Source of the DNA: Caecitellus pseudoparvulus
Lineage: Eukaryota > Protista > Bigyra: Bicosoecida
Direction: 5' to 3'
Assembly (NCBI GenBank): GCA_965644315.1
Contig: CBFFRQ010000043.1
Coordinates: 558,001 to 622,000 of the forward strand
Length of the DNA stretch: 64,000 bases
The translations under genes and the position numbers were made by a program. The notes beneath the pieces were generated by a model, which saw only the letters and a program-made list of their open reading frames with translations, did not search any database and was not told where the DNA came from. Positions within the stretch are counted from its first letter, which is position 1; every line of letters begins with the position of its first letter. This document shows, piece after piece, positions 15,222-64,000 of this stretch.

Positions 15222-15502
15222 GGTTCCGCAGGCCGCCCCATGCGTTGCAAGCACTTTGAGCGGCTGGCAGCTTCAAGACACACGGGCGCCGCGCTGCCGC
15301 CGCGACCTTCACACAAAATCCAAGCACACAAAAGTTACTCCGCACATTGCACACAGGGCAAGGAGTTCTGGGCCCGCACTCGTCGTTTCTCACCGTATCG
15401 GCGCGAGGGCGGTGGCTGTGCGGATTTTGACCCCCACACCTGCCCACGCGCTGCTCGCCCTCTGGCGAAGCACACAGGCACCAGTGGGGCCCCGCACCCA
15501 TC

Positions 15503-35409: not shown

Positions 35410-35591
35410 AGAGTCCGAGGGAGGGGGGTGTCTGGCCAGTGGGAAAGAGGGGGCGTTGGCGGCGGCAGCGTAGTGAGGTTTGCTCTGTGCGCCTCAAAAT
35501 ACAGCACCACAACGAAACAGGTGCCCCATCGTGCAAGTGCTGGCTGTTGCGCCCTGCAGCACCGTGCAGTGCCGTCGGGCAGGCGCCAGCC

Positions 35592-37599
35592 ATGCCAAGC
35601 CGCGGCCGGTCACGGTCCCCGCCGCCGCGGGACCACAGGGACCGCCGGCGGTCTTCCTCTCGAAGCTACAGGCGTCGAGAGTACAGTGACGATGAAGATA
35701 GTTACAGGAGACACCGACACAGGCGGCGGGAGGAGCGGAAAGGGCACCGGAAGCACAAGAAGGAGGTGTGTGAGGCTGAGCAATTACCGCAGCTGCGCCC
35801 GCCTGCACGGCCCTGTGCACACCCTGCCTGCCCAGAAGAAAGACAGGTCACGACGAGACAGGTATGACACAGAGGTTGAACATGCTGTCCCAGAAGTGCC
35901 CCCCTCCACTGGTCTGGGCGTGTACACGAACGAGGACAACCCCTTTGGCGATTCCCGCCTGGACGAGGTGTTTGTGTGGGTGAAGAAGTACGAGAGGGAG
36001 ATCGCCATGGGCCAGCGCACCCGCATGCCGACCGAGGCGGAGCTCATCCGCGAACGGGACAGCCTCATGCACGAGGTGGCGGCCGTGCACGCCCGGCAGC
36101 AGGCCCGTGAGCGCGAGCGGGAGGAGCGAGACCGCCTTCGGGCAGAGGAGGACCGTCTCCGGGAGGCAGAGGCGTACGGCGACCTGGCCAGCAAGGAGGA
36201 GGCCTTCCACCTGGGCCAGGCCGCCAAGCGCTCTGAGATCCGCATCCGTGACGGACGGGAGCGGGCGGTGGATGTGCTGGCGAAGAACCTCCTCATCTGG
36301 GCACGGGCGCACGAGGCGGAGGTACTGCTATCCCAGCACCAGAGCCTGCACACGCTGTCCAACCCCCTGGGCGGGGGCGGCGGCCGCCCATCGCGCATGC
36401 TGGACGTCGTCACGGAGACGCCTGCGCAGGTCCTGGCCCGGTTCCGCCTGGATGTGGCCGGGCTGCAGACCCTGCAGGCGGAAGTGCGTGCCTTTGACGA
36501 CGCCGAGCGCATCAAGCCCGGCGGCACGGACGGCAGCGGCATCTTCGCAGCGTACTGGAGGGCGGTGGGCGTGCTCGTGCACGACGCCCTGCAGCGGGAG
36601 CTGTGCCTGGTGGCCGGGGACACGGACCACTCGGGCCCGGGCGGCGTGCCGGATGCCGTGGCGGGGGAGGTGGACGCCCTGCTGGGCAGCAAGTCCATCA
36701 CGGAGCTGACGCAGACAGAAGCGGAGGTGAAGCAGCGCATTGCTCGCCGGGGCCTGCGGTCCGCAGGTGAGGCGGCGGCGGGCGGCGAGGACGCCTTCTG
36801 GGGCCACGTGCTCAAGGCGCTGTCAGTGTACAAAGCACGGGTGCAGAGCGCCGAGTTGCACCAGCGCATCCTCCTGCTGCGTCTGGGGCAGCTGCAGCGC
36901 ACCAAGGTTATGTTGCAGGAGGATGCCAAAACCACCAGCTCGGCCGCTGCCCGGTCCGGTGTCGGCGGCGCAGGGGTGGACGTCGCCGCGTCAGACTCCG
37001 CCATCGCCACAGCCACTGCGCAGCTGCAGGCAGCAGGCAAGCTCTCTGCCTCGGGCGAGCGCACAGAGCCAGTGGAAGGGGAGGCGCCTGCGGAGGGGCC
37101 AGCCAGCTCAGGCCCTGTGCCACACGGCATGTCTGTGGCGGAGGCTGCCGCCAAGGGCCTGGGAGAGGAGGAAGTGGAGGGTGACGCTGCTGCCGTGGTG
37201 CCTGTGGCGGCGCCGGACTTCCTGCTGACGGGCAAGTTCAAACCGCGCAAGCCGCGTTTCTTCCACCGCGTCAAGACCGGCTGGGCGTGGAACGCCTACA
37301 ACAAGGCGCACTACGACCGGGACACGCCCCCACCAAAAGTCGTGCAGGGGTACAAGTTCACCATTTTCTACCCCGACCTCATCAACAAGTTCGAGACGCC
37401 AGAGTACTTCCTGGAGCCAGCCGACGCGCCGGAATTCGCCATCATCCGCTTCCACGCCGGCCCGCCGTACCAGGACATCGCCTTCAAAATCGTCAACAAG
37501 GAGTGGAATCTGGAGCCCAAGCACGGCTTCAAGTGCCAGTTCGACAAGGGCATTCTGCAGGTCTGGTTCAACTTCAAGCTGGACCGTTACCGAAGGTGA
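35592..37599 (+). CDS. CACTIN: Splicing factor cactin (one intron)
   Basis: YTNEDNPFGDSRL..FVW.KK, FHL.QA..RSEIRIRDGR, and the C-terminal domain KPRKPRFF.RVKTG..WN.YN..HYD...PPPKVVQGYKF.IFYPDLI. Confidence 0.96.
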
Positions 37600-47368: not shown

Positions 47369-48463
47369 TCACAGCTTCGTGAGCTTTGTGAGCCACTCCT
47401 TCAAGCTGGCGTCATTGCTTGCGGAAGCCAGGAAGTGCCCGTCGCGCAGCTTGGGGTGCAGGGTCTGCCGCAGGGCTTGCCGGGCCTTCTCGTGCTCCGC
47501 CAAGCAGTCGAAGCACCGCACGACCTGCTTCAACAGGCGGTTGCTCGGGGCCTTCACCAGCGCCTCGATCATGTGGTGCAGGACGGTGTTCACTGCGCTT
47601 GGGGCGGGCGGGCGAGCTGTGCGAGCGCTGGGTCCTCCCGCGGAGGCAGCCCCACGCACCTGCGTAGAACCGCTCGCCGGTGGCGCAAATGTACTTGAGC
47701 CCCGCATCGTCCAGGAGGATTTTCTGCACGATGAACGTGGCCACCTGGGGCGCAGGGGGCAGGGGGACGTGAGCCATTGAAGTGGAGAACGGAGCTGTGC
47801 TCCGACGCACTGTCTTGGACAGGTCCGAGCCAGACTCCATGATGCGCAGGCACAGCGGGATGATCTCTGTTTGTAACAAGAAGCTGACGACATCTTTGTC
47901 GTCTTGCTGCGTGGGGGCGGGCGGGAATCAGGGGTGCAGCACGGCCAGGCCAGCTGCAGCACACACAGCCCTACCTTCACCAGCGCCCCAATGACGCCGA
48001 GGGAGGTCAACCTCAAGTACTCAAAGGGTTTCTCCTGATTCAGTGTGTTGAGGAAGGGGTATAAGTACAGGGGAATGTGAGCTGTGGGGAAGGCGGGAGG
48101 GCGTGGGCCGCAGCGCTGCGCTGGCGTTTCGGCGTGCACCAGCCCACCTGCCAAGAACTTCTGCCTCGTCTCCTGGTGACTGGCCACGCTCTGCAACAAT
48201 GCCAGCGCGTTGCAGACGCGATTGCTCGCGACCCGAGTCAGGGTCGGCGGCTGCAGGGCTGGGTAGATGGCCACCACCTCCTGCAGCAGCACAGCGACAG
48301 AGCCGAAAGAGTGCCACAGCAGCGGTGCAAGGTAGGGGATGCTCTCCCGCTTCTTGCTCAGCTTCAGCAGCGCAGTGGCCCGCGAAGAAGGCTCGAGAAG
48401 CTGCTTCACCAGAGCAGCCACCTCTGCCTCCTCTTGCTTGTCGCTGGAGGCAGCAGCGGCCAT
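47369..48463 (-). CDS. CNOT9: CCR4-NOT subunit 9 (Rcd1/Caf40), spliced
   Basis: [88 protein letters not shown]. Confidence 0.96.
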
Positions 48464-48628
48464 GTAGGGCGAGTGCGGATTTTGCTGTGTGCTGGGAGGG
48501 GGCGGGTCTCACGCAAGTGCCAGGTGCACGGTGTCTGTCTCTTGCACGTCCTCATGAAGTGGCGGGGGGGGCTCGTGGGCATGTGGATTTGCCACTACGC
48601 TGCATTTGCCTCCACGCGAAGCGCTGCA

Positions 48629-49854
48629 TCACTGAGCAGGCCTCCCGCCGCTGGCGCCGGCAGGCACAGCCCCAGCGTCTTGCCGGTCTTCCCACCTGTC
48701 ATCGCCCCTGCTGGGCCCCGGGCCACTGCGATCCATGCTTCGGCGGTCATTTCCATCCCGCCTGAAGTCCCTGTCCCTGCTGCGGCTTCGGCCGTAGGGG
48801 GACCTGCTGGGCCGCCGGCCATCCCGGTCATCCCGCCCGCCGCCATACCGGTCCCTGGGCGGGGAGCGGGAACGGTGGCGGAAGTCACGCCGGTCGTCGT
48901 ACCGGTCCCCGCCCCGACGGAAGTCGCGCCTGTCATCATACCCGCCTCGGCGGAAGTCACGCCGGTCGTCGTATCCACCCCGACGGAAGTCACGCCGGTC
49001 ATCGTACCCGCCTCTGCGATCATCGTACCCGCCCCCTCGAGGTGGGCCGTCAAAGTGCCTGCGGGGGGGGCCAAGGAACCGCCCACCACCGCCTCCTCCG
49101 CGCACGTCGTGGGCAAAGCCCAGTGTGGCCGGCGCGAAGCGCTCGTTCTTGCCGTAGCTGGGTGCCTCCTTCTGCAGCTCCTCGAAGAAGTCCTTGGGGA
49201 TGGCCTTGGGGTGCCCGAAGTTGCAGTTGAACCCGAACCGGCACTGGCCCGTGAAGAACTGACGGCAGGTTGCAGCCTTGAAGTCAGAGGCGTTGGTGAG
49301 CTCCCCCTGCACGACGCGGCCGCCGTACCACCTGCCGTTCAGGTTCTCCAGGCACGCCTGGGCGTCCTCCTCCCGGAAAAACTTGATGTACACGTGCCCG
49401 ATCAAGTGGTCTGCGAGGTTGTCGAACACCATGAAATCGTCCACCTCCCCGAACTCGGACGCCTCCATGAAGATGTCCTCCGTAAAGTCCAGAAACTGCG
49501 GGGGTGGACCGACCCGTGCCACGCGGAAATCGAGCAGACAGCCCAGCACACGCACGCTTTCGAGGACGTCCTCGTCCTTGACCCGGTCAGGGTTGTCCCC
49601 GGCCGCCATCACATGCCCCTTGGGGTTGTTGTACAGCTGCCTGAACATGACCGTCGTGGACATGCGCGGGGCAATGTGCTTGCGGCTGCACCGTGCGCCG
49701 TGCCTGCACGCTCCAATCTTGAGGTAGAACGGGCAGTTCACCCTGCGGGCAAGGCGAAGAGCAACGCGCTGCAGGAAGGTGCACCCAAACATGCACAACA
49801 TGCCACGCACCGATCCATCTCACTGCCGAACTGCTTCGCCATCTTGTGCGCCAT
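48629..49854 (-). CDS. U2AF1: U2AF small subunit (U2AF35) with RD/RS tail (spliced)
   Basis: GSEMDR|VNCPFYLKIGACRHG.RCSRKH (zinc finger 1), UHM DNLADHLIGHVY.KF, zinc finger 2 ATCRQF..GQC.FG.NCNF.H. Confidence 0.94.
48879..49035 (-). repeat. ~33-bp coding repeat GGYDDRRDFRR x ~4
   Basis: Repeated gaagtcacgccggtcgtcgta-type units on the + strand. Confidence 0.85.
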
Positions 49855-50147
49855 GGCTGCTGGAAGTGTGCCGAAGCTGGCGAGGCAATTTCCGCTACAA
49901 CGTCGCTGCCCAGACCAACGCTGGAGCAGAGGCTTCAAGCCTCGGAAGTGCCCACTGCTAGCGGAAATAAGATGTGGACAGGCAGCTGGATTTTTGTACC
50001 TGCTGCTCGTGATTTGGCTGCGTGGCGGGACTGGCAGAGGTGAAGCGACTCACAGCACACACCCTCGCGCGGAGCAGCCCAGCGCGAAACCAACGCACTT
50101 TGGCGAAGAGCAAGGAAATGGATGTATTGGTAGAGAGGATTGCGGCA

Positions 50148-51197
50148 CTATCTTGCGCGCCGTTTGGCATCACTGGCCCTGGAGCCGTCCTTGAACAGCT
50201 CACCAGTGTACTGGCCCTTCAACATCGTCGCAGCCTTGTAGGCATCCTTATGAGCCCTCGCCTCGTACGTGGAGCCCGTGGCAGCATACCCCACGCGCGG
50301 CTCCAGCGTCACACGCAAGCGGTCAGCGGGCTGCTGCATGAAGGCGGCGTAGCCTCCCCCCCCAAGTGGATGCACACTGGCCGGCGTCGTGCTGGCTCCG
50401 CCAAGCACTGTCGGTCCCCACGCCGCCTCTGGGAACGGCTCTCCGAAAGGCTGCTGCCGAGCCCAACCCGGCAAAGAGGCGCTGTCCATGGCAGACGGGA
50501 AGTGGGCCCACGGACCCTGTGCCCGGTCCAGCACGGCACAGGCGATGGGGGCGCAGCGTGGCACAAAGTCCTTCGCCTCCACTCCGCCCTGCACACCGTA
50601 CTGCCTGGCTGCGCGCTGCACTGTGGCTGCACGGGCAGCGTGGCGCGGGTGGGAGGCGGCAGCCCCCTGCGCCTGCAGCACCACTGGAGCCGCCACTGCG
50701 TGCTGCAGGAATGCGCTAAACTCAGCGTCAGCTTGGTCGCGGGCCCTGGCACCCGCTGATTTGCTGGGAGCCGTGCTGCCAGTCATGTACTGAGCCGGTC
50801 CAGTCCAGAGTGGCCGAGCGGCATGAGCAGGCTGGGCAGGCGCCACGGTCTGCACCGATGCAGGGGGCGGTGTGGACGGAGATGGGCTGCCAGAGCCGGG
50901 AGAAGCAGGCTGCGCGACAGATGGTTTCACCAGGTGCTGTGGCAGAGCATGCTGCACTGCCTCTGCCAGAGCCGCTGGCAGAGCGAGCCCCGCGTCAGCT
51001 TCGGCCAGGCGCTTGGCCAGAACTTCGTCAGCTTGACTCGCCTCGTCGTCCTCCTCCAGAGCCTTGGCAGCTGCAGCAGCCTGCTCAGCGGCAGTTTGAC
51101 GATCGGCTGCGCAGGGGTGTAAGTTTCCCGCCACAACTGCTGTGATGGCCGTCAACCGCCGCCGGCCGATGGGCATCTGAGCCAGAGCAGCCTTCAT
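50148..51197 (-). CDS. Hypothetical protein
   Basis: Long ORF (50148-51359) with genome-typical codon usage. Probable start MKAALAQM. No domain recognised. Confidence 0.5.
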   Translation of the reverse strand: MKAALAQMPIGRRRLTAITAVVAGNLHPCAADRQTAAEQAAAAAKALEEDDEASQADEVLAKRLAEADAGLALPAALAEAVQHALPQHLVKPSVAQPASPGSGSPSPSTPPPASVQTVAPAQPAHAARPLWTGPAQYMTGSTAPSKSAGARARDQADAEFSAFLQHAVAAPVVLQAQGAAASHPRHAARAATVQRAARQYGVQGGVEAKDFVPRCAPIACAVLDRAQGPWAHFPSAMDSASLPGWARQQPFGEPFPEAAWGPTVLGGASTTPASVHPLGGGGYAAFMQQPADRLRVTLEPRVGYAATGSTYEARAHKDAYKAATMLKGQYTGELFKDGSRASDAKRRAR

Positions 51198-51981
51198 GTC
51201 TTCCTCCCCTGCCACCAACGAGCCTGGCGAAAATGACGGAGGGAGGGGGGTGAAAAAACGCGAAATTACACATAAAAAGCCAGTCCTCTGTCCCACACTG
51301 CGCCACCACGCACCTCTGTGCCGAGCCGCTCGAGCAGCGGAATTACCGAGCGCGTGCAAATCTGCAAAGGCAAAACCCCGGCCAAGTCAGCGTTGGCGCG
51401 CGAAGAGCGTCTCAACGAGCACAGCAAGCAGCCTTACACTTGATAACCACATCGACCAACACGTTCACCGCCTGTGAGTCTGCGATATGAATGCTGGAGC
51501 AGGCCAGTGTCTCCAACACTGCCTGTCGAAGAGCAGCGTGCTGGGCGTCGCTGACTGCCATCGCGCTCCCCCTTGGACCTGCAATGCGTCAACCACGATA
51601 GAGTATAGGCAGCACTGGTGAGTATTCGGTTGGTGTTGAAAGTGAATATTTGGCTCAGTCTCGAAGTTGGGAGGAGGCGTGGCCAGCACCGACCAAACCA
51701 CATACACAATGCCCCAATGCCCCAAACTGCACTTCACCCCGTGACGACGCAGGCATACCATGTCACTGCACAATCGCCCATCAGTGTGCCTGGTGCCTCG
51801 TCTTCACTCTTGGCCGCCACAGGTGAGCATGCGCTGGTGCAAGTGCGGAAGTTGCACCCTCACAAGTCAAGCACGACAACGCCTCCCCGCCACACCAACA
51901 CACGCGCCCACTGCTTCCACCCCACAGGAGCTTGCTGCATAGCACTGCCATACCCGATCAGACCCCCTGCGATCCATCGCC

Positions 51982-54900
51982 ATGGTGCGTGGGCGTTGGC
52001 ATGGCGCTTCGCTTTCGCCAGCACTTGCGCCACAGCGTGTCGCACACACACCACAGCACACAGCGCCTCGCTCCTCCCCCATGCCACAGGCGGCAGCCAC
52101 AGGACAAGCCATGGACGGCAGTGCAAGAACCACTGAACGTATCGATCACAGGCTGGCTAAGGTGGTGGCGGCATGCTTGGGCAAGTTGAAGTGCCTTCCA
52201 GGCAGAGTCATGGACCACGGCCCCGCACTGCGAGGACTGGCAGCCATTGGGCGCGGCGAAGCGCCTGTTGCAGGTCATGACACCCCATCGGCCATGAGCC
52301 TGGTGGAGCTGGAGGCTGCACTGCGTGATGCGGGGAGTGCGCTGCTGGAGCAGGCTGGGCTGTTGGCGGGGCAGCGTGAGCGAGGTGGTGTGTGTGCTGC
52401 GCTGCAGTACCTGTCGTTCCGGTGCTTCACTGCGGTGGATGTGCTGCATCAGGCGACATCTGGTGTGAGTACCGATGCAGTGCCGGAGGGTGACGCATTG
52501 TGGGGCGCCATTGTGGGTGCTTGGGGCAGTGTGCGGAGCGGCGTGAATGTGGAGGGTGCGCTGGCTGACCTGACGCGATGGTGGCAAGGTTTTGAGGAGG
52601 GGGGGGTGGATGTGGCTGGTGGGAGTGGCCCTGTCACACATGATGCGGGTGGCGTGGCTGCGACGGATGCGGCTCAGGCTGGCATATGGCAGCAGGCTGA
52701 GTGGCTGCGAGGCGAGGCGGCAGGCGAATTGATGAGTGAGAGTGCTGCGGTGCACTTGGAGTGTGCAATGAGTGCGGTGGAGGAGCTGCGTGGACTGCTG
52801 GGGTGTGGGCCGGTGATGAGTGGCCGGAAGGTGAAGGCTGTGGGTGGGCTGGACTTGTCGGGCGGCTTGGAGTGCCTGAACGGCAAGGGGGTGAGTGTGT
52901 ACAGTGGACTGAGTGAGATCGTGGATGAGAACATTGGAGAAGCTGACGTTGTGGAACAGTGGGCAGCAAGTGTGGAGGCGGGTGCGAGGGCGCTTGCCAC
53001 GAGTGTTGGCGCTGTGAAGCGTGGCGAAGCGGCTCGCATCGCCCATGGCTTGCCGCGGATGTCGCAGAAGTTACGCAAGCTCGCGCTGGCTCACATTTGT
53101 GGTGGCAGTCATGCTGATGAACCCATTGGCGAGCGGAGCAGTGTCACGGTGCAGGTGCAATGTGAGGCGGGGTGGCCGCTGAGGTTGTTCCTGGAGGATG
53201 AAGCGTGGGGCAATGTTGAGCTGGATGTGAAGCAGCGCGTGGCTGTGCGGGTGCTGGGGGCGTGTGCTGTGGCGGAGGCGTGCGGAGTGAGTCTGAGTGA
53301 TGTGAGTGTGGGGAGCTTTGTGGTGGTGGGCATGAAGAGTGGCAGTGTGGGTGATCTGGTGGGCGCACTGGATGGAGGTGGGGTTGAAGTTTTGCTGAGT
53401 GTGTGTGGCGGTGTGTGGGGCACAGGTCGCACTGATGGTGGCAGCCGTGGTGGTGAGGGTGGTGGTGTGTTGGGTGTGTTGCATGAGGTGCTTGGTGTGG
53501 GAGGTGGTGCGTGGGTCGGCAGATCGGGCATTGGGTCAAGCTTCGTCGGCAGCGGTGAAGGTGGCGAACATGCACTGTCGAGCGCGTTGGAGGTGTTGGC
53601 GCGGGGAGGGGGTGGTTGCTGCATGGGTGCGTATGCGATGGCATGTGAAGGAAGTGGAGGTGGTGTGGGTCGCTTGTCAGGTGTGGACAGTGCTGTACGG
53701 AGCTGGCTTGATCGAGAGCAGGCAGCTGCTGCGGCAGGTCAGGTGTTGGCAGCCCAATCCGAGGCAGTTATGGCGCAGGCGGCCGAGGTTGATGCAGCTT
53801 CAACTGTGCAGCCAGAGTCTACTTCTGAGCAGGGAAGAATCAGTATGGTAAACACTGCTGCATTTGTGGCAGCGTGCCGAAAAGGGGAACTTGAGAAAGT
53901 GCGAGAGCTGCTTGCATTGATGGGGGGTGAGGCAGTAGATGTGCACGCGGCGGCATGGGGTGGACCTGAGGCCGCCTTCCGAGTGGCATGCGCAAGAGGC
54001 CACACACGTATCGTGCGCGAGCTTCTGGCCCTCACTGGAGCGCGGGAAGTGGATGTGCATGCGGGAAATTGGTATGGACCTGAGGCTGCCTTCCGACAGG
54101 CATGCGCCAATGGCCACACAGACATCGTGTTTGAGCTGTTGGCCCTCACCGGGGCGCGGGAGGTGGATGTGCACGCGGCGGATTGGGATGGACCCGAGGC
54201 CGCCTTCCGAGGGGCATGCGCAAGAGGCCATACAGACATCATGTATGTGCTGCTAAGCCTCACCGGGGCGCGAGAAGTGGATGTGCATGCGGCGGATGGG
54301 AATGGACCTGAGGCCGCCTTCCGGCTGGCATGCCGGGAGGGCCACACAGACATCGTGCATGCGCTGCTAAGCCTCACCGGGGCGCGAGAAGTGGATGTGC
54401 ATGCGGCGGCATGGCGTGGACCTGAGGCCGCCTTCCGAGTGGCATGCGAGGAGGGCCACACTGACATCGCGCGTGAGCTGCTAAGCCTCACAGGGGCGCG
54501 AGAAGTGGATGTGCATGCGGCGGACTGGCGTGGACCCGAGGCCGCCTTCCGAGAGGCATGCGAGGAGGGCCACACTGACATCGTGCGTGAGCTGCTAAGC
54601 CTCACAGGGGCGCGGGAAGTGGATGTGCACGCGGCTTTTGAGGATTTGCCTGAGACCGCCTTCGGAATGGCATGTGCCAATGGTTACACTGACATCGTGC
54701 GTGAGCTGCTAAGCCTCACTGGGGCGCGGGAAGTGGATGTGCATGCGGCGTATGGGGATTGGCCTGAGGCCGCATTCCGGGCCGCATGTGTCAATGGCAA
54801 CACAGACATCGTGCGTGAGCTGCTAAGCCTGACTGGGGCGCGGGAAGTGGATGTTCGTGCGGCAGATGGGGATCAGCCTGGAGTCATCTTCCGATGGGCA

Positions 54901-56766
54901 TGCGAGGAGGGCCACACAGACATCGCGCGTGAGCTGCTAAGCCTCACAGGGGCGCGAGAGGTGGTTGTGCACGCGGCGGATGGGCATGGACCTGAGGCCG
55001 CCTTCCGAGAGGCCTGTGACTGGGGCTACACAGACATTGTACGCGAGCTGTTGGGCCTTACTGGGGCGCAGGAAGTGGATGTGCACGCGGCGGATGGAGA
55101 TGGACCCGAGGCCGCCTTCCGGAGGGCATGCCATAGGGGCCACACAGACATCGTGCGTGAGCTGCTTAGCCTCAGTGGTGAGCGGGAAGTGGATGTGCAT
55201 GCGGGAAATTGGAATGGACGTGAGGCTGCCTTCCGAGACGCATGCCGTTTTGGCCACGTTCCGATCGTGCGGGAGCTTGTGGGACTGGGTGGCCGCAGGA
55301 AAGTTGATGTGCACGCAGCAGATAGGTGTGGACCTGAGGCCGCCTTCCGAGACGCATGCAACAATGGCCACGTAACTGTCGTGCGTGAGCTGCTCTCCCT
55401 TTCCGGGGCCAGTGAAGTGGACGTGCATGCGGCATCTGGGGGCGGACCTGAAGCTGCCTTCCGAGACGCGTGCACCAATGGACGCACCGCCATCGTGCGT
55501 GAGCTGCTCGCACTCACTGGAAAACGTCAAGTGGACGTGCATGCGGCAGCTTGGGGTGGACCTGAAGCTGCACTTCGAGGCGCATGCGCAAGGGGCCACA
55601 CACGTATCGTGCGCGAGCTGCTGGCCCTCTCTGGGGAACGTGAAGTGGATGTTCATGCGGCGGATGAGGATGGACCTGAGGCCGCCTTCCGAGAGGCATG
55701 CGCCAATGGCCACACAGATACCGTGCGCGAGCTGCTGGCCCTCGCTGGGGAACGTGAAGTGGATGTTCATGCGGCAGATGAGGTTGGATCTGAGGCTGCC
55801 TTTCGAAAGGCCTGCGCACATGGAAACTCGGACATCATGGATGAGCTGCTGGGCCTCACTGGGGCGCGGGAAGTGGATGTGCATGCGGCGGCATGGGGTG
55901 GACCTGAGGCCGCCTTCCGACTGGCTTGTGCCAATGGCCATGCAGACATAATATCCAAGCTGTTGAGTCTCATTGGGGAGCGGGAAGTTGATGTGCACGC
56001 AGCGGATGGGGACGGGCCTGAGGCAGCCTTCCGAGCCGCGTGCGCTCATGGTCGCATAGGCGTCGTGCGTGAGCTGCTGGCCCTCACTGGGGCGCGGGAA
56101 GTCGATGTGCACGCGTCGGATAAAGATGGACCTGAGGCAGCCTTCCGAGCCGCGTGCGCTCATGGTCGCATAGGCGTCGTGCGTGAGCTGCTGGCCCTCA
56201 CTGGGGCGCGGGAAGTCGATGTGCACGCGTCGGATAAAGATGGACCTGAGGCAGCCTTCCGAGAAGCATGCGCAAGGGGTCACACAGACATCGTACGTGC
56301 GCTTCTGGGTCTGACTGGGGCCCGAGAGGTGGATGTGCATGCGGCGGATGGGAATGGACCTGAGGCCGCCTTCCGAATGGCATGCATCAATCTTCGCAAA
56401 GGCATCGTACGTGAGTTGTTAACCCAAAGTGGGGATCGAAGGATCCCTGAGAGCGTGCTGCAGAAACAAGTGGCAAGATTCCCGTGGTTGGACAAGTACA
56501 CGCGCCCTGCGAGTTTTCCCTGCAGTATGCAAACAACTGTCCAGCGGCCCCTATCTCTCCCCGTACCCCACCCAAACACCAGCGCAGCTGACAACCCGCG
56601 CAGCCTCGGCAGCCGCCCACCGATGCCCCCCCCTCCTCCCCACCCCCTGGGCGCTCCTCGGACTGGTGCCAGGAGTGCCTCTCCACCTCCTGGGGCAGTT
56701 GATTTGCAAGAGCTCATAAGGCAACGGCAAGCAAAGATGGACTGCACGGACAGTCAGTCAAGCTGA
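51982..56766 (+). CDS. Variable ankyrin-array protein A: ~600-aa N-terminal region, N-cap, 22 x 38-aa ankyrin repeats, Pro-rich tail
   Basis: ATG 51982 is probably followed by intron 51985-52089 (gtgcgt...ccacag). Repeats VDVHAxxxxGPEAAFRxACxxGHTDIVRELLxLTGARE. Confidence 0.9.
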   Translation: MVRGRWHGASLSPALAPQRVAHTPQHTAPRSSPMPQAAATGQAMDGSARTTERIDHRLAKVVAACLGKLKCLPGRVMDHGPALRGLAAIGRGEAPVAGHDTPSAMSLVELEAALRDAGSALLEQAGLLAGQRERGGVCAALQYLSFRCFTAVDVLHQATSGVSTDAVPEGDALWGAIVGAWGSVRSGVNVEGALADLTRWWQGFEEGGVDVAGGSGPVTHDAGGVAATDAAQAGIWQQAEWLRGEAAGELMSESAAVHLECAMSAVEELRGLLGCGPVMSGRKVKAVGGLDLSGGLECLNGKGVSVYSGLSEIVDENIGEADVVEQWAASVEAGARALATSVGAVKRGEAARIAHGLPRMSQKLRKLALAHICGGSHADEPIGERSSVTVQVQCEAGWPLRLFLEDEAWGNVELDVKQRVAVRVLGACAVAEACGVSLSDVSVGSFVVVGMKSGSVGDLVGALDGGGVEVLLSVCGGVWGTGRTDGGSRGGEGGGVLGVLHEVLGVGGGAWVGRSGIGSSFVGSGEGGEHALSSALEVLARGGGGCCMGAYAMACEGSGGGVGRLSGVDSAVRSWLDREQAAAAAGQVLAAQSEAVMAQAAEVDAASTVQPESTSEQGRISMVNTAAFVAACRKGELEKVRELLALMGGEAVDVHAAAWGGPEAAFRVACARGHTRIVRELLALTGAREVDVHAGNWYGPEAAFRQACANGHTDIVFELLALTGAREVDVHAADWDGPEAAFRGACARGHTDIMYVLLSLTGAREVDVHAADGNGPEAAFRLACREGHTDIVHALLSLTGAREVDVHAAAWRGPEAAFRVACEEGHTDIARELLSLTGAREVDVHAADWRGPEAAFREACEEGHTDIVRELLSLTGAREVDVHAAFEDLPETAFGMACANGYTDIVRELLSLTGAREVDVHAAYGDWPEAAFRAACVNGNTDIVRELLSLTGAREVDVRAADGDQPGVIFRWACEEGHTDIARELLSLTGAREVVVHAADGHGPEAAFREACDWGYTDIVRELLGLTGAQEVDVHAADGDGPEAAFRRACHRGHTDIVRELLSLSGEREVDVHAGNWNGREAAFRDACRFGHVPIVRELVGLGGRRKVDVHAADRCGPEAAFRDACNNGHVTVVRELLSLSGASEVDVHAASGGGPEAAFRDACTNGRTAIVRELLALTGKRQVDVHAAAWGGPEAALRGACARGHTRIVRELLALSGEREVDVHAADEDGPEAAFREACANGHTDTVRELLALAGEREVDVHAADEVGSEAAFRKACAHGNSDIMDELLGLTGAREVDVHAAAWGGPEAAFRLACANGHADIISKLLSLIGEREVDVHAADGDGPEAAFRAACAHGRIGVVRELLALTGAREVDVHASDKDGPEAAFRAACAHGRIGVVRELLALTGAREVDVHASDKDGPEAAFREACARGHTDIVRALLGLTGAREVDVHAADGNGPEAAFRMACINLRKGIVRELLTQSGDRRIPESVLQKQVARFPWLDKYTRPASFPCSMQTTVQRPLSLPVPHPNTSAADNPRSLGSRPPMPPPPPHPLGAPRTGARSASPPPGAVDLQELIRQRQAKMDCTDSQSS
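53935..56442 (+). repeat. Tandem array of 22 x 114-bp ankyrin-coding units
   Basis: Unit starts (gtggatgtgca..) recur at exact 114-nt spacing (53935, 54277, 54391 ... 56329) with no indels. Confidence 0.95.
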
Positions 56767-56930
56767 CCAGTGAATTCCCAGTGCGAGCCAATGCTAGTGC
56801 ATGCAACGGGGCATTCCTCACGCGCTCTCTGTGCCACCCTGACCCGTGTGGAAGCGGACACGGCCGCTGATGTTCGTGCTGGGCAGCTCATATCAAACGA
56901 ACTCTTCAAAGCAATGCACCACATCAGACT

Positions 56931-57638
56931 CTAGCACAATCGCTCATTCCCTTGCATGTCATGCACTGCAGCGCCGCCTGGCCTCCCCAACACCTCCGGA
57001 CGCAGGTGCAGGATCGGGCAGTCTGTCGGCAGCAGGGGGCCAGCGCACAGCGGCGTCGTCATCCACGCAGCAGCCTCGCCCTGCGACGACTCCGCTGACA
57101 CACCCACAGCCGCTGCGGCAGGGGCAGCTTCACACGCCCACCCCCGCACCAGCTCCACAAGCGGCGTGCAGGCTGGGAGGGCGGTGTCAGTGGCAGCCTC
57201 ACAGTCATGGGCCCATGTCGCGGTGGATGGGCCCACCAGCCACGTCACGTCACCCATCATGCCGGGTGGCCACTCGGCCGCCTCCACTGCCAGTGTCCGG
57301 AGCAGGCGCACGACAGTCCGCCGCACAGTGGACGAGGCTGACGCCAGGGACGTGCGCAGAGAGGGCGCCACCAGTTCCACCAGGAGCGCCAACGCCCCTG
57401 CAGCGGACCAGCCGCGTGCGTCATGGCCACGGCCCTCGTCCGCCCGAGCACACAGCGTGAAGAACGGCACGACTGGCAGGCACAGCGGGCACTGGGTGTG
57501 CTGTGCTGCCCACGAGCCGATGCGTCTTGCGAGGTGGCAGATGATGCCGTCCAGCACAGCGCCTGCTGTGGTGGATATGGCAGCGGCCCTGCCACACAGA
57601 TCAGTGCCCTCAACACTGTCTGGCCATGTGCAGCACAC
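56931..57638 (-). pseudogene. Possible gene fragment (HEAT-like) between the two ankyrin genes
   Basis: 235-aa ORF with host-like composition. LRTSLASASSTVRRTVVRLLRTL looks like a HEAT-repeat helix. No clear start or end context. Confidence 0.3.
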
Positions 57639-58016
57639 TGAGTGCTGTCATGGTGAGGATGGCGGCGGCATCGATTGTGGGCACTTGGCTCAATCGCGGA
57701 GTTGGGAGGAGGCGTGGCCAGCACCGACCAAGTCACACAAACAATGCCCCAATGCCCCAAACTGCACTTCACCCCGTGACGACGCAGGCATACCATGTCA
57801 CTGCACAATCGCCCATCAGTGTGCTCGGCCACTTGTCTGCGGTCCTGTCTGCCACAGGTGAGCATGCGCTGGTGCAAGTGCGGAAGTTGCTCCCTCGCAC
57901 GTCAGCTGCGACAAAGCCTCCCCGGCACTCCATCACACCCGCCCACCGCCTCTGCTTTGCAGGATCTAGCAATACAGCGGTATCACACCTGACCTGGCCC
58001 CCATCCATCCATCGCC

Positions 58017-60652
58017 ATGGTGCGTGCGCGTGGGCATGGCGCCTCGCTTTCGCCAGCACTTGCGCCAGAGCGTGTCCCACACACTACAGCAAAGAGCGCG
58101 CCCTGCCCCTCCCCACGCCACAGGCAGCAGCCACAGGACAAGCCTCGAACGGCAGCGCAGCAGCCGCTGCAAGCATCGACAGTACTCAAGCTGGGGTGGT
58201 GGCGGCATGCTTGGGCAAGATGAAGTGCCTTCCAGGCAGAGTCATGGACCACGGCCCCGCACTGCGAGGACTGGCAGCCATTGGGCGCGGCGAAGCGCCT
58301 GCTTCGGGTGATGACGCCCCATCGGCCATGAGCCTGGTGGAGCTGGAAGCTGCACTGCGTGAGGCAGGGAGTGCGCTGCTGGAGCAGGCTGGGCTGTTGG
58401 CGGGGCAGCGTGAGCGAGGTGGTGTGTGTGCTGCGCTGCAGTACCTGTCGTTCCGGTGCTTCACTGCGGTAGATGTGCTGCGGCAAGTGGCGCGCGGTGT
58501 GAGTGCCGATGCTGTGCCGGAGGGTGACGCATTGTGGGGCGCCATTGTGGGTGCTTGGGGCAGTGTGCGGAGCGGCGTGAATGTGGAGGGTGCACTGGCT
58601 GATCTGACACGATGGTGGCAGGGCTTCGAGGTGGCGGTTGTGGACGCGGCTGGTGAGGGTGGCTCTGTCACACATGATGCCGGTGGCGAGTCGGCGACGG
58701 ATGCGGCTTTGGCTGGCATGCGTCAGCAGGCTGAGTGGCTGCGAGGCGAGGCGGCAGGCGATCTGACGAGTGAGAGTGCTGCGGTGCACTTGGAGTGTGC
58801 CGTGAGTGCGGTGGAGGAGCTGCGTGGACTGCTGGGGTGTGGGCCGGTGATGAGTGGCCGGAAGGTGAAGGCTGTGCGTGGCTTGGACTTGTCGGGCGGC
58901 TTGGAGTGCCTGAACGGCAAGGATGTGAGTGTGTACAATGGAAAGAGTCGCATTGAGGATGAGGATGTTGGTGGAGCTAGTGATGTGGAGCGTTGGGCAG
59001 CAAATGCGGAGGCGGGTGCGAGGGCGCTTGCCACAAGTGTTGGCGCTGTGAAGCTTGGCGAAGCGGCTCGCATCGCCAATGGACTGCCGCGGATGGCACA
59101 GACTCCATACAAAGCAGCACTGACGCATAGTTACCCTGGAAGTCGAGCTGATGAGCCGGTTGGCGAGCGGAGCAGTGTCACAGTGCAGGTGCAATGTGAG
59201 GCGGGGTGGCCGCTGAGGTTGTTCCTGGAGGATGAAGCGTGGGGCGATATTGAGCTGGATGTGAAGCAGCGCGTGGCTGTGCGGGTGCTGGGGGCGTGTG
59301 CTGTGGCGGAAGCATGTGGGGTGAGTCTGAATGGTGTGGGTGTGGGGAGCTTCGTGGTGGTGGGTGTGGGGAGTAGCAGTGTGGGTGATCTGGTGGGCGC
59401 ACTGGATGGGGGCGGGTGTGAGGTGGTGTTGAGTGCATGTGGCGGTGTGTGGGGCACAGGTCACGCTGATAGTGGCAGCCGTGGTAGTGAGGGTGGTGGG
59501 GCGTTGGGTGTGTTGCATGAGGTGCTTGGTGTGGGAGGTGGTGCGTGGGTCGGCAGATCGGGCATTGGGTCAAGCTTCGTCGGCAGCGGTGAAGGTGGCG
59601 AACATGCATTGTCAAGCGCATTGGAGGTGTTGTCGCGAGGAGGGAGTGGTTGCTGCATGGGTGCATATGCGATGGCGTGTTTGGGAAGTAAAGGTGAGGT
59701 GGGGCTTCTGTCGGATGTGGAGAGTGCTGTGCGGGGTGTGCTTCATCGCGAGCAGGCAGCTGCTGAGGCAGGTCAGGCGCGGGCTGGGCATGCCCCTGGG
59801 CAAGAGAAGTTCAGTAAGAAGAACACCACTGAGTTTGTGGCAGCGTGCAAGGATGGTAATCTTGCGAGAGTGCATGAGCTGCTTGCATTGACGGGGGATG
59901 AAGCAGTGGATGTGCACGTGGCGGATGTTGGTGGACCCGAGGCCTCCTTTCGATGGGCATGCCGCTGGGGTCACACCGAAATCGTGCGAAAGCTGTTGGG
60001 TCTCACTGGGGCAAGGACTGTGGACGTGCATGCAGCAGGGTGGGATGGGCCCGAGGCCGCCTTTCGGGCCGCATGTACAAATGGCCATGCAGACATCGTG
60101 CGAGAGCTACTGATCCTCACTGGAGAACGTGAAGTGGATGTGCATGCAGAGTCTAACGGCGGACCCGAGGCCGCTTTCCGTGGCGCGTGCTTCCTTGGCC
60201 GTACCACCATTGTTCGGTGGTTGTTGTCTCTGTCCGGTGCGAGGGCAGTTGATGTGCATGCAGCAGACGGGCATGGGCCTGAGGCTGCCTTGCGGGCTGC
60301 ATGCCGCAATGGTCACACGGACATCGTGTATGAGCTGTTGGGCCTCACTGGTGCGCGGGAAGTCGATGTGCATGCAGCAGATGAAGATGGACCTGAGGCT
60401 GCCTTCCGAGGGGCATGCAGGGGCGGCCACACAGACATAGTGCGTCGGCTGTTGGCGCTTAGGGGCGATCGAGCAGTTGATGTACATGCATCAGATAGCG
60501 TTGGACCTGAGGCTCCCTTTCGAGAGGCATGCACCAATGGCCACACAGGCATCATGCGCGTGTTCCTTAAGCTTTCTGGGGATCGCAAGATACCAGACAG
60601 CGTGCGGCAGGAGCAAGCAGCTCGAATGCCGTGGCTACAGCACTTGTTTTGA
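58017..60652 (+). CDS. Variable ankyrin-array protein B: paralogous N-terminal region, N-cap, 6 x 38-aa ankyrin repeats
   Basis: ATG 58017 followed by intron 58020-58123, the same structure as paralogue A. The N-terminal region is largely identical to A. Ends GDRKIPDSV...PWLQHLF. Confidence 0.9.
59906..60589 (+). repeat. Tandem array of 6 x 114-bp ankyrin-coding units
   Basis: Same 114-bp consensus as 53935-56442. Confidence 0.93.
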
Positions 60653-60956: not shown

Positions 60957-63900
60957 TCACACCTCCTCCCTCGCACGCTTCCTGCCCTTCCCACTACCAC
61001 CTCGCAGCACCTTCAGCTTGTCCATGCGCTTCGCCACGTGGCGCTTCTTCGCCTGTGCCTTCCGACTACGGCGTGCGGCAGCTGCTGCCGGGTTCACCAC
61101 CGCCTCCTGGGCCACCTGCTTCGCCCGCCGCTCCTTCGCCGCCGCCCTGGCCCGCCGCTCGCCGTTGTACGCCGTCAGGAACACATCTGCGCCCATGGCA
61201 GCCTGCACCGCCTCCATGACCTCCGATGCCAAGGCGCCTGCCTCCGCTGCAGCAGCCGCCTGCTGTGCTTGCTCTGACCAAGATGGCGCATCGGCCAGGC
61301 GGGGGTCGCTGGCCACGTGCTCTGCTGCCTGCACAGTGCGGAACACTGCCCGTGCCACCGGCACCACGTAGCGCTGCAGGTCTGCCTGGGGCAAGTGCCC
61401 AGCCATGGCCCCGAACACGTTCAGCGCCGTGGTGGCCGCCGGCCCGCCCTTGTGCACTGCCGTGTTGCTGAGGCGCTGCAGCAGCCAGAACAGCGGGTCC
61501 CGCGCACCGCCGTCGTCGTCGTGGGCGGTGTGTGTGGAGGGCGGGTTGTCCCGCTTCACCTTGCCGCCCACCACCTCCACGCCACCCACGAGCAGGGTGG
61601 ACTTGCCGGCCAACCGAGCAGTGCGCTCGGCGAGGTGGGGTGGGATGGTATTGCGGGAGCTGGGCGGCGTCGTAGCGTACAGCCCCACCGCCGTGAACAG
61701 TAGCACCGGCGCCAAAGCCGTGCCCTGCTCCCTGCTCAGCGTCCCGTCCGCCAGCTGCACACAGGCTGCCCGGGCCAGGGCGAACAGGCGCTCATCCCCA
61801 GCCAGCCACGCCGCCACGCCAGGTGGTGGGGGGCAGCTCCCCACGCTCGCCACTGCCACGGTGTTCAGGACGGCGCCCAGCCACCTGGCTGCTGCAGCCC
61901 GCACCCACGCGTGAGGGAACACCATGATGTCGGTCAGGGCATCCAGAGACGTCCACAGCGCACTGTGCAGTGTGACCGCAGTGGTGGTGGCGTCTGACTC
62001 TTGCGCCTTCCCTGCCTTGCGCCGCCGCTTCGTGCCGCTGGCAGGCGTACCACCACTGCCACTGCCACCGGCCGCTGCCTCGCTCAGCACACGGGGATGT
62101 GCCTCCCACAGACGCTGCAGGAGGGTGCAGGCGTAGTACGCCGTGTCCCACGGCAGGGCTGCGGCAGCCTTGCGGGCCTGTGCCTGAGCCGCACGCCGCG
62201 CAGCCACGGCAGGCGTCACCACACGCCCCCACCTGTCCACATCCCCGTCACCGCTGGCATCACTGTCGTCGCCCTCCAGCTCCCCGCCGCCACCCGCCAC
62301 TCCACTCGGCACGGCACGTGCAGTGTCAGGAGCACTGGCTTGCCCCGACCCACTCGCCGCACCCAGCAACGCCAGACTGCTCCCCCCTGCCGCCGCGGCA
62401 TCCTCCACGTCACTCCCATCGCTATCACCATCATCCGCCGCTGCGGCGTCCTCCTCCAAGTGCTGGGCGTGCCGCATGGCTGCCGAGGCAGCATCACTCG
62501 CCTGCGCCTCCTGCACGCCCTCCGGTTCAGGCGCCAGGGCTGATCCATCACCCCCATCGCCCGATCCCCACCAGTCATGCCCAAACGTCTCCCTCCCTGC
62601 AGCAGCCTTCGCCTCGCTCGCCGCCAGCTTGCTCGCGTACACGCCAGCCAGCTCCTCCTCGGCACTGCGCATGGCACGCACAGCACTGGCCACCTCCTCC
62701 GCTGCCCGGTTCATAGCCTTGGCCAGACGACGCCCCACCAGCAGCTCAGGACTGCTGGCGCCCGCCAAGCTCAGGGTGTGCAGCCCCACCCGGCGCATGG
62801 CTCCACCCGCCTCGCCACCTGCCCACGACGCAGCCATGTCCAGGAGGCTGCCTGCCTGCCCAGGCTCCACGCTCGCCAGCAGGCTCTGCAGCACGGCGCC
62901 CACACCAGCACGCACTTGCAGCATGGGCTCCAGACCCAGCCGCTGCACGAGGGCCACGAACATGGGCGCCGCGTGCTCCGCCAGCACCGGCGGCGGAAAC
63001 TGCTTGATGATGGCCAGCAGCATGTCCAGGACTGCCAGCCGCCCCGCCTGCTGGGAGTACGCCAGGTTGGCCAGGAAGAAGTGCATGTACCCTGCCAGGC
63101 GCTTGGCCGACAGCGGGTAGTGCAGGAGGTACGTGAGGAAGACACGCGCACACTGCGCCCGGGTGGCAGGCCGCGTGCCCTGCACCATGAAGTGAGACAC
63201 CGCGTCCATCGTCTCGTACAGCTCAGGTGCCATGAGGCGGCGTGTGACGATGCACCGCAGCAGCTGCAGCGTCGCGCCGGCCCGCTGGGGGTGCTGCAGG
63301 TCTGCCGCCACCAGCACCAGCAGCGCCGACAGCTGGCCCTCGCTGATGGTCGCCCCACGCAGGTGCTTCAGCATGGCCACAGTGGCCCGGGCCGCACACT
63401 GTGCCAAGGCATCCCGCACTGGGCCAGCGGACCGCCCGCCCCCTGCCGTGGACCGCACGTGCCGCAGGATGGCCTTGGAGATGCCCTTGGCGTTGGGCTC
63501 CATGGACGGCAGGGCTGCAGTGTGCGGCAGCAGCAGGGTCAGACCGCGCAGGGCCAGCGTCAGCAGGTCGCTCTGCCGCGTGCTGGTCAGTGTGTGGGCC
63601 AGCAGCGGCACGAAGGGGTCCAGGTCAGGGAGGGTGCCGCCTTCCTCCGCAGGGGCCAGGGACACCACCCGCTTGCGCAGGGACGCCTGCAGCAGGTTCA
63701 GCCCCAGCCACACCAGCTTGCCAGCGGCCAGGGCATTGCCGCCACTGGACCCCACGGACTCGGACAGCCCGTCCCGCGTCCACACGTACCGGCCCGTCCC
63801 CGTCATGCGTGGCTCGGGCGCGATCTTGTGTGTGTCTGTGGGGAAGGCCGTGATGCCCAGTGCTGCGGCAGATGCTGAGCGGGGCGTCGGGGCGCCTGTG

Positions 63901-64000
63901 GACGCCTGTGGCGCAGCAGGTGCTGAACCACCCTCCCCACCACCACCATCGCCCTCCTCCTCAAACACCGCCGCCAATCGCGCAGCCGCTGACGAGATGG
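60957..64000 (-). CDS. UTP20: U3 snoRNP/SSU processome component UTP20, 3' part (5' end outside window)
   Basis: LDPFVPLL, PELYETMD.V, R.QC..VFL.YLLHYPL..KRL...FFLANL.Y....GRLAVLDML, HAWVR, and the basic C-terminus V.NPAAAAARR.RK...KK. Confidence 0.93.
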   Translation of the reverse strand, partial: ISSAAARLAAVFEEEGDGGGGEGGSAPAAPQASTGAPTPRSASAAALGITAFPTDTHKIAPEPRMTGTGRYVWTRDGLSESVGSSGGNALAAGKLVWLGLNLLQASLRKRVVSLAPAEEGGTLPDLDPFVPLLAHTLTSTRQSDLLTLALRGLTLLLPHTAALPSMEPNAKGISKAILRHVRSTAGGGRSAGPVRDALAQCAARATVAMLKHLRGATISEGQLSALLVLVAADLQHPQRAGATLQLLRCIVTRRLMAPELYETMDAVSHFMVQGTRPATRAQCARVFLTYLLHYPLSAKRLAGYMHFFLANLAYSQQAGRLAVLDMLLAIIKQFPPPVLAEHAAPMFVALVQRLGLEPMLQVRAGVGAVLQSLLASVEPGQAGSLLDMAASWAGGEAGGAMRRVGLHTLSLAGASSPELLVGRRLAKAMNRAAEEVASAVRAMRSAEEELAGVYASKLAASEAKAAAGRETFGHDWWGSGDGGDGSALAPEPEGVQEAQASDAASAAMRHAQHLEEDAAAADDGDSDGSDVEDAAAAGGSSLALLGAASGSGQASAPDTARAVPSGVAGGGGELEGDDSDASGDGDVDRWGRVVTPAVAARRAAQAQARKAAAALPWDTAYYACTLLQRLWEAHPRVLSEAAAGGSGSGGTPASGTKRRRKAGKAQESDATTTAVTLHSALWTSLDALTDIMVFPHAWVRAAAARWLGAVLNTVAVASVGSCPPPPGVAAWLAGDERLFALARAACVQLADGTLSREQGTALAPVLLFTAVGLYATTPPSSRNTIPPHLAERTARLAGKSTLLVGGVEVVGGKVKRDNPPSTHTAHDDDGGARDPLFWLLQRLSNTAVHKGGPAATTALNVFGAMAGHLPQADLQRYVVPVARAVFRTVQAAEHVASDPRLADAPSWSEQAQQAAAAAEAGALASEVMEAVQAAMGADVFLTAYNGERRARAAAKERRAKQVAQEAVVNPAAAAARRSRKAQAKKRHVAKRMDKLKVLRGGSGKGRKRAREEV

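Follow-up and report, generated by a model that had tools for sequence, protein, structure and literature searches.

The window analysed here, a stretch of 64,000 nt (G000:C43:558001-622000) within a 30.6-Mb assembly of 215 contigs, carries two genes that lie head-to-tail on the same strand and that join a long N-terminal module to a C-terminal array of ankyrin repeats: gene A (open reading frame [ORF] 51982-56766, forward strand, 1594 aa) and gene B (ORF 57626-60652, forward strand, 1008 aa). The anatomy of arrays and modules was derived from ORFs, Tandem Repeats Finder (TRF), Pfam and motif anchoring, with units delimited by anchoring on the VDVHA motif. The gene A array (53935..56442, forward) consists of 22 consecutive units of exactly 38 aa (114 nt), and the gene B array (59906..60589, forward), which was modelled as a stacked ankyrin solenoid, of six units of exactly the same length. 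TRF reports for gene A a period of 114 nt in 21.5 copies (78% matches, score 2214) and shorter arrays for gene B, while the Pfam family Ank_2 matches gene A at 2.8e-64 (214 bits) and gene B at 2.5e-19 (70 bits), against a gathering cut-off of 27.3. An earlier reading of the DNA made from its letters (hereafter the sequence-only reading) had already given 22 and six exact 38-aa units within 51982-60652, and VDVHA anchoring, TRF and Pfam bear it out.

Both arrays are enclosed by dedicated caps, as the same reading had proposed, and the caps recur across the gene family to which the two genes belong. The N-cap (FVAAC..G.L..V.ELL) occupies 53863..53934 (forward) in gene A, where it is a half repeat without the hairpin, and 59834..59905 (forward) in gene B, where it forms two helices in the AlphaFold2 (AF2) model. 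At the other end, ORF translation and paralogue comparison place the C-cap (GDR.IP..V...) helix of gene A (IPESV...), a proline-rich tail and the stop codon at 56443..56766 (forward), and the gene B C-cap tail (IPDSVRQEQAARMPWLQHLF), modelled as two short helices, ends with its stop codon at 60590..60652 (forward). The proline-rich tail of gene A is about 100 aa long, has a predicted amphipathic end and is not found in the other paralogues, which stop about 19 aa past the last unit (...FESLKELI). Upstream of the N-caps lie the N-terminal modules, that of gene A (52090..53862, forward; about 590 aa, the first 240 or so predicted to be helical) and that of gene B (58124..59833, forward), which is 83% identical to it. 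Inspection by eye revealed no signal peptide or transmembrane stretch in the translations of either gene.

Fixed and variable positions of the repeat unit

Per-position entropy over 158 internal units from 30 paralogues separates a nearly fixed framework from five hypervariable positions: positions 8, 9, 17, 20 and 21 each range over 11-17 residues at 2.5-3.3 bits, positions 23, 24 and 32 take an intermediate place (1.4-1.8 bits), and the remainder are nearly fixed, with V1, V3 and L33 invariant and F15, L30, L31, H4 and E12 at 99%. The same five positions rank highest among the 28 window units (position 17, 3.24 bits; 20, 2.69; 9 and 21, 2.51 each; 8, 2.41). The near-invariant framework that the sequence-only reading had described thus extends to the family, and so do its variable positions 8-9, 17 and 20-21, but the span 6-9 that it gave for the first group was too wide, since across the family position 6 is A in 89% of units and position 7 is D in 80%. 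With the N-terminal module as reference, the five sites show an enrichment in N (15.7-fold), W (6.9-fold), Y (4.6-fold), R (2.5-fold) and D (2.4-fold), in keeping with the W, Y, R and D named by that reading, whereas F, which it had also listed, stands at 1.1-fold. The 158 units hold 138 distinct five-residue combinations.

The AF2 model of the gene B array, comprising N-cap, six units and C-cap, has a mean predicted local distance difference test score (pLDDT) of 85 and a predicted template-modelling score (pTM) of 0.84, and each modelled unit consists of a two-residue hairpin bridge, helix 1, helix 2 and a short extra turn. Foldseek returns FEM1 proteins and designed ankyrin repeat proteins (DARPins) as the best matches of this model, at probability 1.00, and the best sequence matches of the array in the PDB are designed ankyrins. 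Alignment to the library protein ANK-N5C-281 (4qfv) sets unit positions 8, 9, 17, 20 and 21 against canonical ankyrin positions 2, 3, 10, 13 and 14, of which position 10 also varies among the repeats of 4qfv and positions 2, 3, 13 and 14 are reportedly among the six randomised in DARPin libraries. In the model, positions 8 and 9 form the hairpin tip, 17 and 20 lie in helix 1 and 21 follows directly after it, and because 17, 20 and 21 are spaced i, i+3 and i+4, they fall on one helix face. The five sites therefore appear to coincide with the hairpin tip and concave face, the ligand-binding surface to which the sequence-only reading had assigned them, a placement that comes from residue alignment and helix geometry and not from measured solvent exposure.

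The 38-aa period, to which 185 units in the 30 copies conform exactly, departs from the canonical ankyrin period of 33 residues; compared with 4qfv, one of the five extra residues is inserted before helix 1 and four follow helix 2, and the unit is a length variant of the ankyrin repeat. Another 24 units, nearly always the first of their array, are 47 aa long, with a hairpin loop nine residues longer that goes with a semi-conserved pattern, E-G-x-V-E-V-x-P-x-F-x-x-Q (e.g. L031, L032, L041); neither window gene contains a unit of this kind.

Selection on the units was estimated in two ways. Pairwise Nei-Gojobori counts over 150 distinct units gave proportions of synonymous (pS) and non-synonymous (pN) differences of 0.318 and 0.075 in the framework and a pN of 0.557 at the five sites, and over all pairs the ratio of hypervariable pN to all-codon pS was 1.72 (bootstrap 1.60-1.85). 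A count resembling single-likelihood ancestor counting, which combined a FastTree tree with codon parsimony, gave a non-synonymous to synonymous rate ratio (dN/dS, omega) of 0.22 for the framework and of 1.67 for the five sites pooled on the all-codon tree (416 non-synonymous changes versus 250 expected at an omega of 1, P ~1e-21), an estimate that is conservative because this tree is biased against the result; on a framework-only tree the pooled omega rose to 2.59. Per-site values at the five positions, obtained with the same approximate method, were 1.36-2.15. Two alternative pairing schemes were set aside, that by reciprocal nearest neighbours because its choice by total distance disfavours pairs that differ at the sites in question, and that by low framework dS, which gave 6.1, because it is biased the opposite way.

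The five codons change synonymously at 1.03-1.24 times the global rate, which gives no hint of local hypermutation. The arrays have a content of G+C at third codon positions (GC3) of 0.64, and their observed pS of 0.318 compares with 0.74 at full synonymous saturation; dS is thus far from saturated, and extreme codon bias does not depress it. Entropy within the hypervariable codons is about 1.5 bits at bases 1 and 2 and about 1.0 bits at base 3, the third base of position 9 being T in 140 of 150 units. The N-terminal module, with a pN/pS of about 0.44 between paralogues, is under moderate purifying constraint. We conclude that omega at the five sites lies firmly above that of the framework and probably above 1, which is the outcome of the dN/dS check that the sequence-only reading had proposed for its variable positions.

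Family size and array turnover

That reading had also suggested a genome-wide count with the N-terminal region as query; a six-frame search with the first 600 aa of gene A returned at least 73 copies of the module without internal stops, not two. Of the outcomes that would have spoken against that reading, those on site location, dN/dS and copy number were put to the test, and none of them came about. Identity to the query region spans 36-100%, with 47 of the 73 copies at 71% or above, and among core paralogues the module is 72-83% identical. Many copies lie in head-to-tail clusters at intervals of about 4.5-5.5 kb, five of them on contig C71, four each on C79 and C21, and three each on C22, C142 and C72. 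The conserved N-terminal part is followed by an array of variable length, as had been proposed from the two window genes, the 30 copies analysed holding 2-22 units each.

Units resemble others of their own gene more often than chance predicts: for 73 of the 158 units, against eight expected, the most similar unit belongs to the same gene, and among these 158 no unit identical in amino-acid sequence is shared between genes. An exact run of 133 nt in gene A is repeated at an offset of 114 nt (56017..56263, forward), and on its sequence this appears to be a recent out-of-register duplication of one unit. Pairwise identity within arrays averages 79%, or 87% when the five hypervariable sites are left out, and five paralogues reach 85-90%.

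Two divergent members, G000:C154:18722-24286 (reverse strand, 1917-aa frame) and G000:C13:967605-972473 (forward strand, 1795-aa frame), have the module and long runs of 36-aa Sel1 repeats within a single open frame, and the metagenome protein P0008 has the same module-plus-Sel1 layout. The type of repeat is thus swappable, from ankyrin to Sel1, on the same module. The Sel1 run of the C154 member extends over about 3.5 kb, room for some 30 contiguous repeats, and in P0008 module and Sel1 run are separated by the N-cap with one or two retained ankyrin units of 38 aa.

A genome search with three units gave 217 matches from 1,623 first-look candidates, a number that would make the 38-aa repeat type far more abundant than the 73 module copies. 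Arrays of this type also lie in frames of about 270-1225 aa where the module search gave no match, some of them at contig ends (for example C165:562-3312, C74:5-2965, C67:831041-836772 and C111:25029-25997), and the repeat probably occurs without the module as well. At G000:C40:228663-230995 (forward), a module match lies in a 612-aa frame and an array in a second frame of 299 aa behind it; this may be a frameshifted or broken copy. On C62, a 38-aa array in a 434-aa frame (G000:C62:7957-8523, forward) lies about 1 kb upstream of a weak NACHT match on the same strand (9482-9775, forward), and this locus may be a separate ankyrin plus NACHT gene.

N-terminal module, upstream cassette and genomic setting

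Pfam gave no match for the module in either window protein or in 17 family members, and a profile search of the PDB gave no usable match, its only hit being a capsid protein at an E value of 1.5. When a 17-member profile was run against 1.84 billion proteins, it recovered 19 cluster representatives, all at E values below 1e-30 and all belonging to this family, and a word-indexed search of 5.8 billion proteins recovered nine metagenome proteins; the relatives found are exclusively marine metagenome proteins of the same architecture. By these searches the module ranks as an orphan at the level of sequence.

An AF2 model of the module, built from 17 sequences, shows in order a helical region of about 240 residues, a hairpin, a long helix, an alpha/beta stretch (better predicted, at residues 360-440), a glycine-rich gap and further helices. 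Three lines of comparison, two of which share this one weak model (pLDDT 44.7), point to a kinase-like fold. Kinase or pseudokinase domains make up all 50 of the best VIA-align matches (Z up to 8.9, model residues 325-525), with MLKL, CTR1, RAF, LRRK2 and TYK2 tied and with Z values of 7-8 being common for models without a true match; all ten ESM Atlas shape matches are kinases, at TM scores of 0.23-0.32; and the language-model neighbours of the module include Pkinase, APH, RIO1, Kdo and ABC1 clusters at 0.88-0.90. Foldseek found nothing for the module model, and the kinase families in Pfam show no sequence-profile similarity to it at E values up to 10. At the would-be catalytic loop the family consensus, read by eye, is S-L-x-G/D-V-G-V-G-S-F, with no conserved Asp, Lys or Asn. 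We treat the combination of a helical region with a dead kinase-like fold as a lead that is about equally likely to be right or wrong; in gene A the possible degenerate kinase-like fold, with its glycine-rich insert, would span model residues 250-570 or so (nt ~52834-53796).

The 450 nt or so upstream of the genes (51500-51981 for gene A and 57550-58016 for gene B, forward) are conserved in all 30 aligned copies and include two intron-like cassettes; because this region is conserved in every copy, promoter and 5' leader appear to have been duplicated together with the gene. The first cassette is represented in gene A by a putative intron of about 105 nt in the 5' untranslated region (51823..51927, forward; CCACAG/GTGAGC ... 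CACAG/G). The second has the consensus CATCGCC-ATG/GTGCGT ... CCACAG/GCAGCAGC, and its GT/AG boundaries are kept in 30 of 30 copies, with a length that is usually 105 nt (range 97-111). In gene A the conserved start codon (51982..51984, forward; CATCGCC-ATG) is immediately followed by the GT donor of a putative 105-nt intron (51985..52089, forward; GTGCGT ... CCACAG), which is in frame, so that the ORF reads through it. If this cassette is spliced, the ATG constitutes the sole coding bases of its exon; reading through it leads to a stop or a frameshift in 11 of the 30 copies.

The corresponding putative intron of gene B (58020..58123, forward), which follows a start codon located by the upstream alignment (58017..58019, forward), measures 104 nt, a length not divisible by three, so that the conserved ATG and the coding frame can be joined by splicing only. 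Gene B lacks the downstream in-frame ATG found in most copies, and homology between its ORF and gene A begins only at about aa 165, so the ORF start at 57626 is probably not the real one. The likely gene models are ATG 51982-51984 joined to 52090-56766 for gene A and ATG 58017-58019 joined to 58124-60652 for gene B, which would imply that the genes are not strictly intronless and carry an intron of about 105 nt directly after the start codon.

The GC content of the window is 61-74%, and its neighbouring ORFs, which encode cactin, a sterol-sensing/Patched-like protein, an ABC transporter and a UTP20-like protein, identify the source as eukaryotic; genes A and B themselves lie between the cactin gene and the UTP20-like gene, both ordinary nuclear genes. 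GC3 of the two modules (52090-53862 and 58124-59833) is 0.55-0.61, against 0.80-0.84 in the neighbouring genes used for comparison (window 193-2883, 12354-18975, 35428-37599 and 60957-63977). Third positions of the modules are skewed (G 0.44, C 0.17, T 0.27, A 0.12), with a GC skew of +0.34 to +0.36 on the coding strand, and the arrays are much less skewed; transcription-linked mutation asymmetry, young age or a different origin could each account for this. Just upstream of gene A, a 705-aa ORF without a Pfam match (48077-50194, forward) has an intermediate GC3 of 0.66, which is unlike its housekeeping neighbours and nearer to the ankyrin family.

The stretch occurs in public sequencing runs from marine metagenomes and a few coded organisms. 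Contigs shorter than 800 nt in two marine metagenomes, too short to inform on array length, match parts of the gene A array and its flanks letter for letter; the same or a nearly identical strain thus lives in the sea. A genome search for light-harvesting proteins gave no match, nor did the control of that search give a signal, and the source is a marine protist, with heterotrophy weakly suggested by the missing light-harvesting match.

Interpretation and comparison with known systems

The explanation that we favour as a whole, and whose chances of being right we put about level with those of being wrong, is that this lineage-restricted family forms a repertoire with one scaffold and many diversified binding surfaces. 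At least 73 genes, often in tandem clusters and restricted to this lineage, would each encode a conserved module of about 590 aa, helical and then perhaps a catalytically dead kinase-like fold, joined to a capped solenoid of 38-residue ankyrin repeats. The framework would be held nearly constant while diversifying selection drives five residues per repeat apart and unequal recombination alters the number and order of units, and the outcome would be a repertoire in which one scaffold presents many different binding surfaces. From the pattern of variation, we would expect the arrays to recognise varied and changing ligands, non-self molecules of viruses, prey or symbionts being the most plausible, and the conserved module to relay the binding event. 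To our knowledge, almost nothing has been reported on the immune or non-self recognition systems of free-living marine protists, which live on prey and are under constant attack by giant viruses. The pattern observed here goes well past what chance would give, and what the sequence-only reading had said on structure and evolution largely stands; the receptor for pathogens or prey with an N-terminal effector that it had proposed would be a reasonable candidate function. A more specific version, which we put forward tentatively and with low confidence, is a so far undescribed class of protist innate immune receptors without an NTPase switch, in which a helical domain of MLKL-like layout, a dead kinase and a hypervariable ankyrin or Sel1 sensor would be combined, the binding of a viral or other foreign protein would free the N-terminus for cell death or another defence, and some 70-80 germline paralogues would serve as a fast-evolving repertoire.

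Several observations weigh against this interpretation. The analyses of units, entropy and dN/dS rest on 30 of the at least 73 copies, and the arrays of genes A and B, at 70% and 67% internal identity, are the least conserved of the sample. The model of the module is poor, and no recognised signalling or death domain was found in it. None of the listed public runs that contain the stretch is recorded as RNA; a seawater library labelled as metatranscriptomic has contigs on the coding part only, but that run is flagged as probably DNA and was not counted as evidence of transcription, and its contigs, being mostly 90-95% alike, are likely to derive from paralogues or relatives. Ankyrin proteins in general vary at surface positions while conserving their framework, the reciprocal-nearest-neighbour pairs give a hypervariable pN/pS of only 0.5-1.5, and the counting ignores transition bias and uses a poorly resolved tree of recombining 114-nt units, for which the assumption of a single tree is violated.

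These last points would be expected if there were no adaptive diversification, that is, if duplication and gene conversion kept the framework alike, the five sites drifted near-neutrally and an omega above 1 were an effect of the crude method. We consider this distinctly improbable, for omega reaches 1.67 on a tree that is biased against such a value and 2.59 on the framework-only tree, and the array pS of 0.318 is not below that of the module (median 0.228), so conversion has not depressed dS, nor is it near the saturation ceiling of 0.74. Moreover, the third bases of the hypervariable codons are largely ancestral while bases 1 and 2 are scrambled, and the enrichment of the sites in W, Y, R, D and N is what binding hot spots typically show, and drift does not. 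A mobile, selfish or virus-derived element, or secreted effectors directed against other organisms, would suit the atypical GC3 and strong G/T skew of the coding strand as well as the location of many copies on short contigs and in clusters, and ankyrin repeats are massively expanded in giant viruses and intracellular bacteria. All copies, however, share the upstream cassette with two introns of spliceosomal type, the window genes are embedded between nuclear cactin and UTP20-like genes, and the relatives found are confined to the marine metagenome proteins of the same architecture. Neither Pfam (both proteins and the module) nor the comparison of the module with solved structures yielded a transposase or integrase match, or a capsid match beyond the one at an E value of 1.5, and no signal peptide is evident by eye. 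This reading is very improbable, the least likely of those considered here, and a viral or mobile origin is judged unlikely.

It is also conceivable, with about the same modest probability as the NTPase-less receptor class, that the proteins are adaptors for scaffolding or localisation whose variable surfaces would reflect sub-functionalisation among many cellular partners, on the model of the Giardia Neks, whose N-terminal kinase domains are mostly dead and which act in the cytoskeleton and in subcellular targeting. In that organism, 133 of 198 Neks consist of an N-terminal kinase domain followed by 1-26 ankyrin repeats, 71% lack catalytic residues, and the family turns over rapidly between strains (Manning et al., 2011, PMC3218828). 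The kinase-like leads for the module and the want of a visible signal peptide or transmembrane stretch would suit such a role, and if the kinase-like lead holds, the architecture parallels that of the Giardia Nek and Protein 21.1 families, albeit by analogy only. The module nevertheless has no Nek or Pkinase profile match, its kinase nature being a fold-level lead, and the TALM motif of Giardia is not present here, its position being held by EAAFR. The Giardia Nek-ankyrin expansion has cytoskeletal roles and divergent repeats (PMC3218828), and not near-identical units with a few hypervariable sites at omega above 1, a pattern that instead matches fungal NLR repeats (PMC4986451); tandem clusters of 75-83% identical paralogues with different surfaces likewise fit an arms-race repertoire better than stable partners in the cell.

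The family shows the signature of fungal NLR sensors, namely near-identical repeats with few selected sites and changing number, on a chassis without an NTPase, which would indicate that this diversifying receptor design arose more than once and would provide a concrete set of genes for testing. Should the kinase-like fold prove true, this lineage would join Giardia as the second among protists in which dead kinases coupled to ankyrin arrays are greatly expanded. For repeat-protein engineering, the arrays are of interest as a natural counterpart of DARPin libraries with a 38-residue repeat, in which five extra residues per repeat are tolerated and the sites of natural variation can be read off.

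We found no description of this ankyrin-array family in the literature searched, and its parts recall several known systems. Like DARPins and ANK-N5C (PDB 4qfv, 4o60), the arrays consist of an N-cap, identical internal repeats and a C-cap, and as in the ANK-N5C library the variation is confined to positions that align with canonical 2, 3, 10, 13 and 14. Unlike DARPins, they are natural, keep DARPin positions 5 and 33 fixed (as P and A), have five extra residues per repeat and are fused to a large N-terminal module. The order of a predicted helical N-terminal region and a kinase-like fold resembles the layout of MLKL, whose pseudokinase ties for the best fold match (Z 8.9), but that match is shared with many ordinary kinases on a model of pLDDT 45 and comes with no sequence similarity, and MLKL has no repeat sensor.

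The sequence-only reading had likened the family to nucleotide-binding NOD-like receptors (NLRs), variable lymphocyte receptors and transcription activator-like effectors, and these comparisons are best taken as analogies. For NLRs, one part of the likeness stands: a C-terminal repeat sensor that forms a superstructure, as in NLRs and other signal transduction ATPases with numerous domains (STAND), is present here as ankyrin repeats, or as Sel1 repeats on the same module. The other part does not, since Pfam found no NACHT or NB-ARC domain in genes A and B or in 17 family members at E values up to 10, no Walker A motif was noticed by eye in the family consensus, and genome-wide there was no NB-ARC match and only six weak NACHT matches, none at the listed family loci. 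The family is not an NLR, because the defining NTPase was not found.

The closest known parallel is nonetheless provided by the ankyrin (ANK), tetratricopeptide (TPR) and WD repeats of high internal conservation (HIC) in fungal NLRs, which are defined by more than 85% identity between repeats across at least 100 aa and which show polymorphism in repeat number, concerted evolution and positive selection (Dyrka et al., 2014, PMC4986451). At a Podospora ANK locus, five positions on the inner helices and hairpin of the concave face are positively selected, and effector and repeat domains are shuffled among fungal NLRs (PMC4986451). The present family shares with the HIC repeats of Podospora HNWD, het-d and het-e the near-identical tandem repeats, variable number, few selected sites, signs of unequal recombination and large paralogous repertoire, and the exchange of ankyrin for Sel1 repeats on one module recalls that of ANK and TPR-like repeats on related N-terminal parts in fungi. 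It differs in the 38-residue rather than 33-residue repeat, in belonging to a marine protist and not a fungus, in an internal identity that falls mostly under the HIC cut-off of 85% (the mean of 79% and the 67-70% of the window genes lie below it, the 85-90% of five paralogues do not), and in a repeat number seen here to vary between paralogues (2-22 units) and in fungal HIC repeats between individuals. The pattern of repeat diversification is therefore one already known from fungal NLR repeats (PMC4986451), carried in this family by a different chassis, in which an orphan module of about 590 aa takes the place of the NACHT or NB-ARC NTPase.

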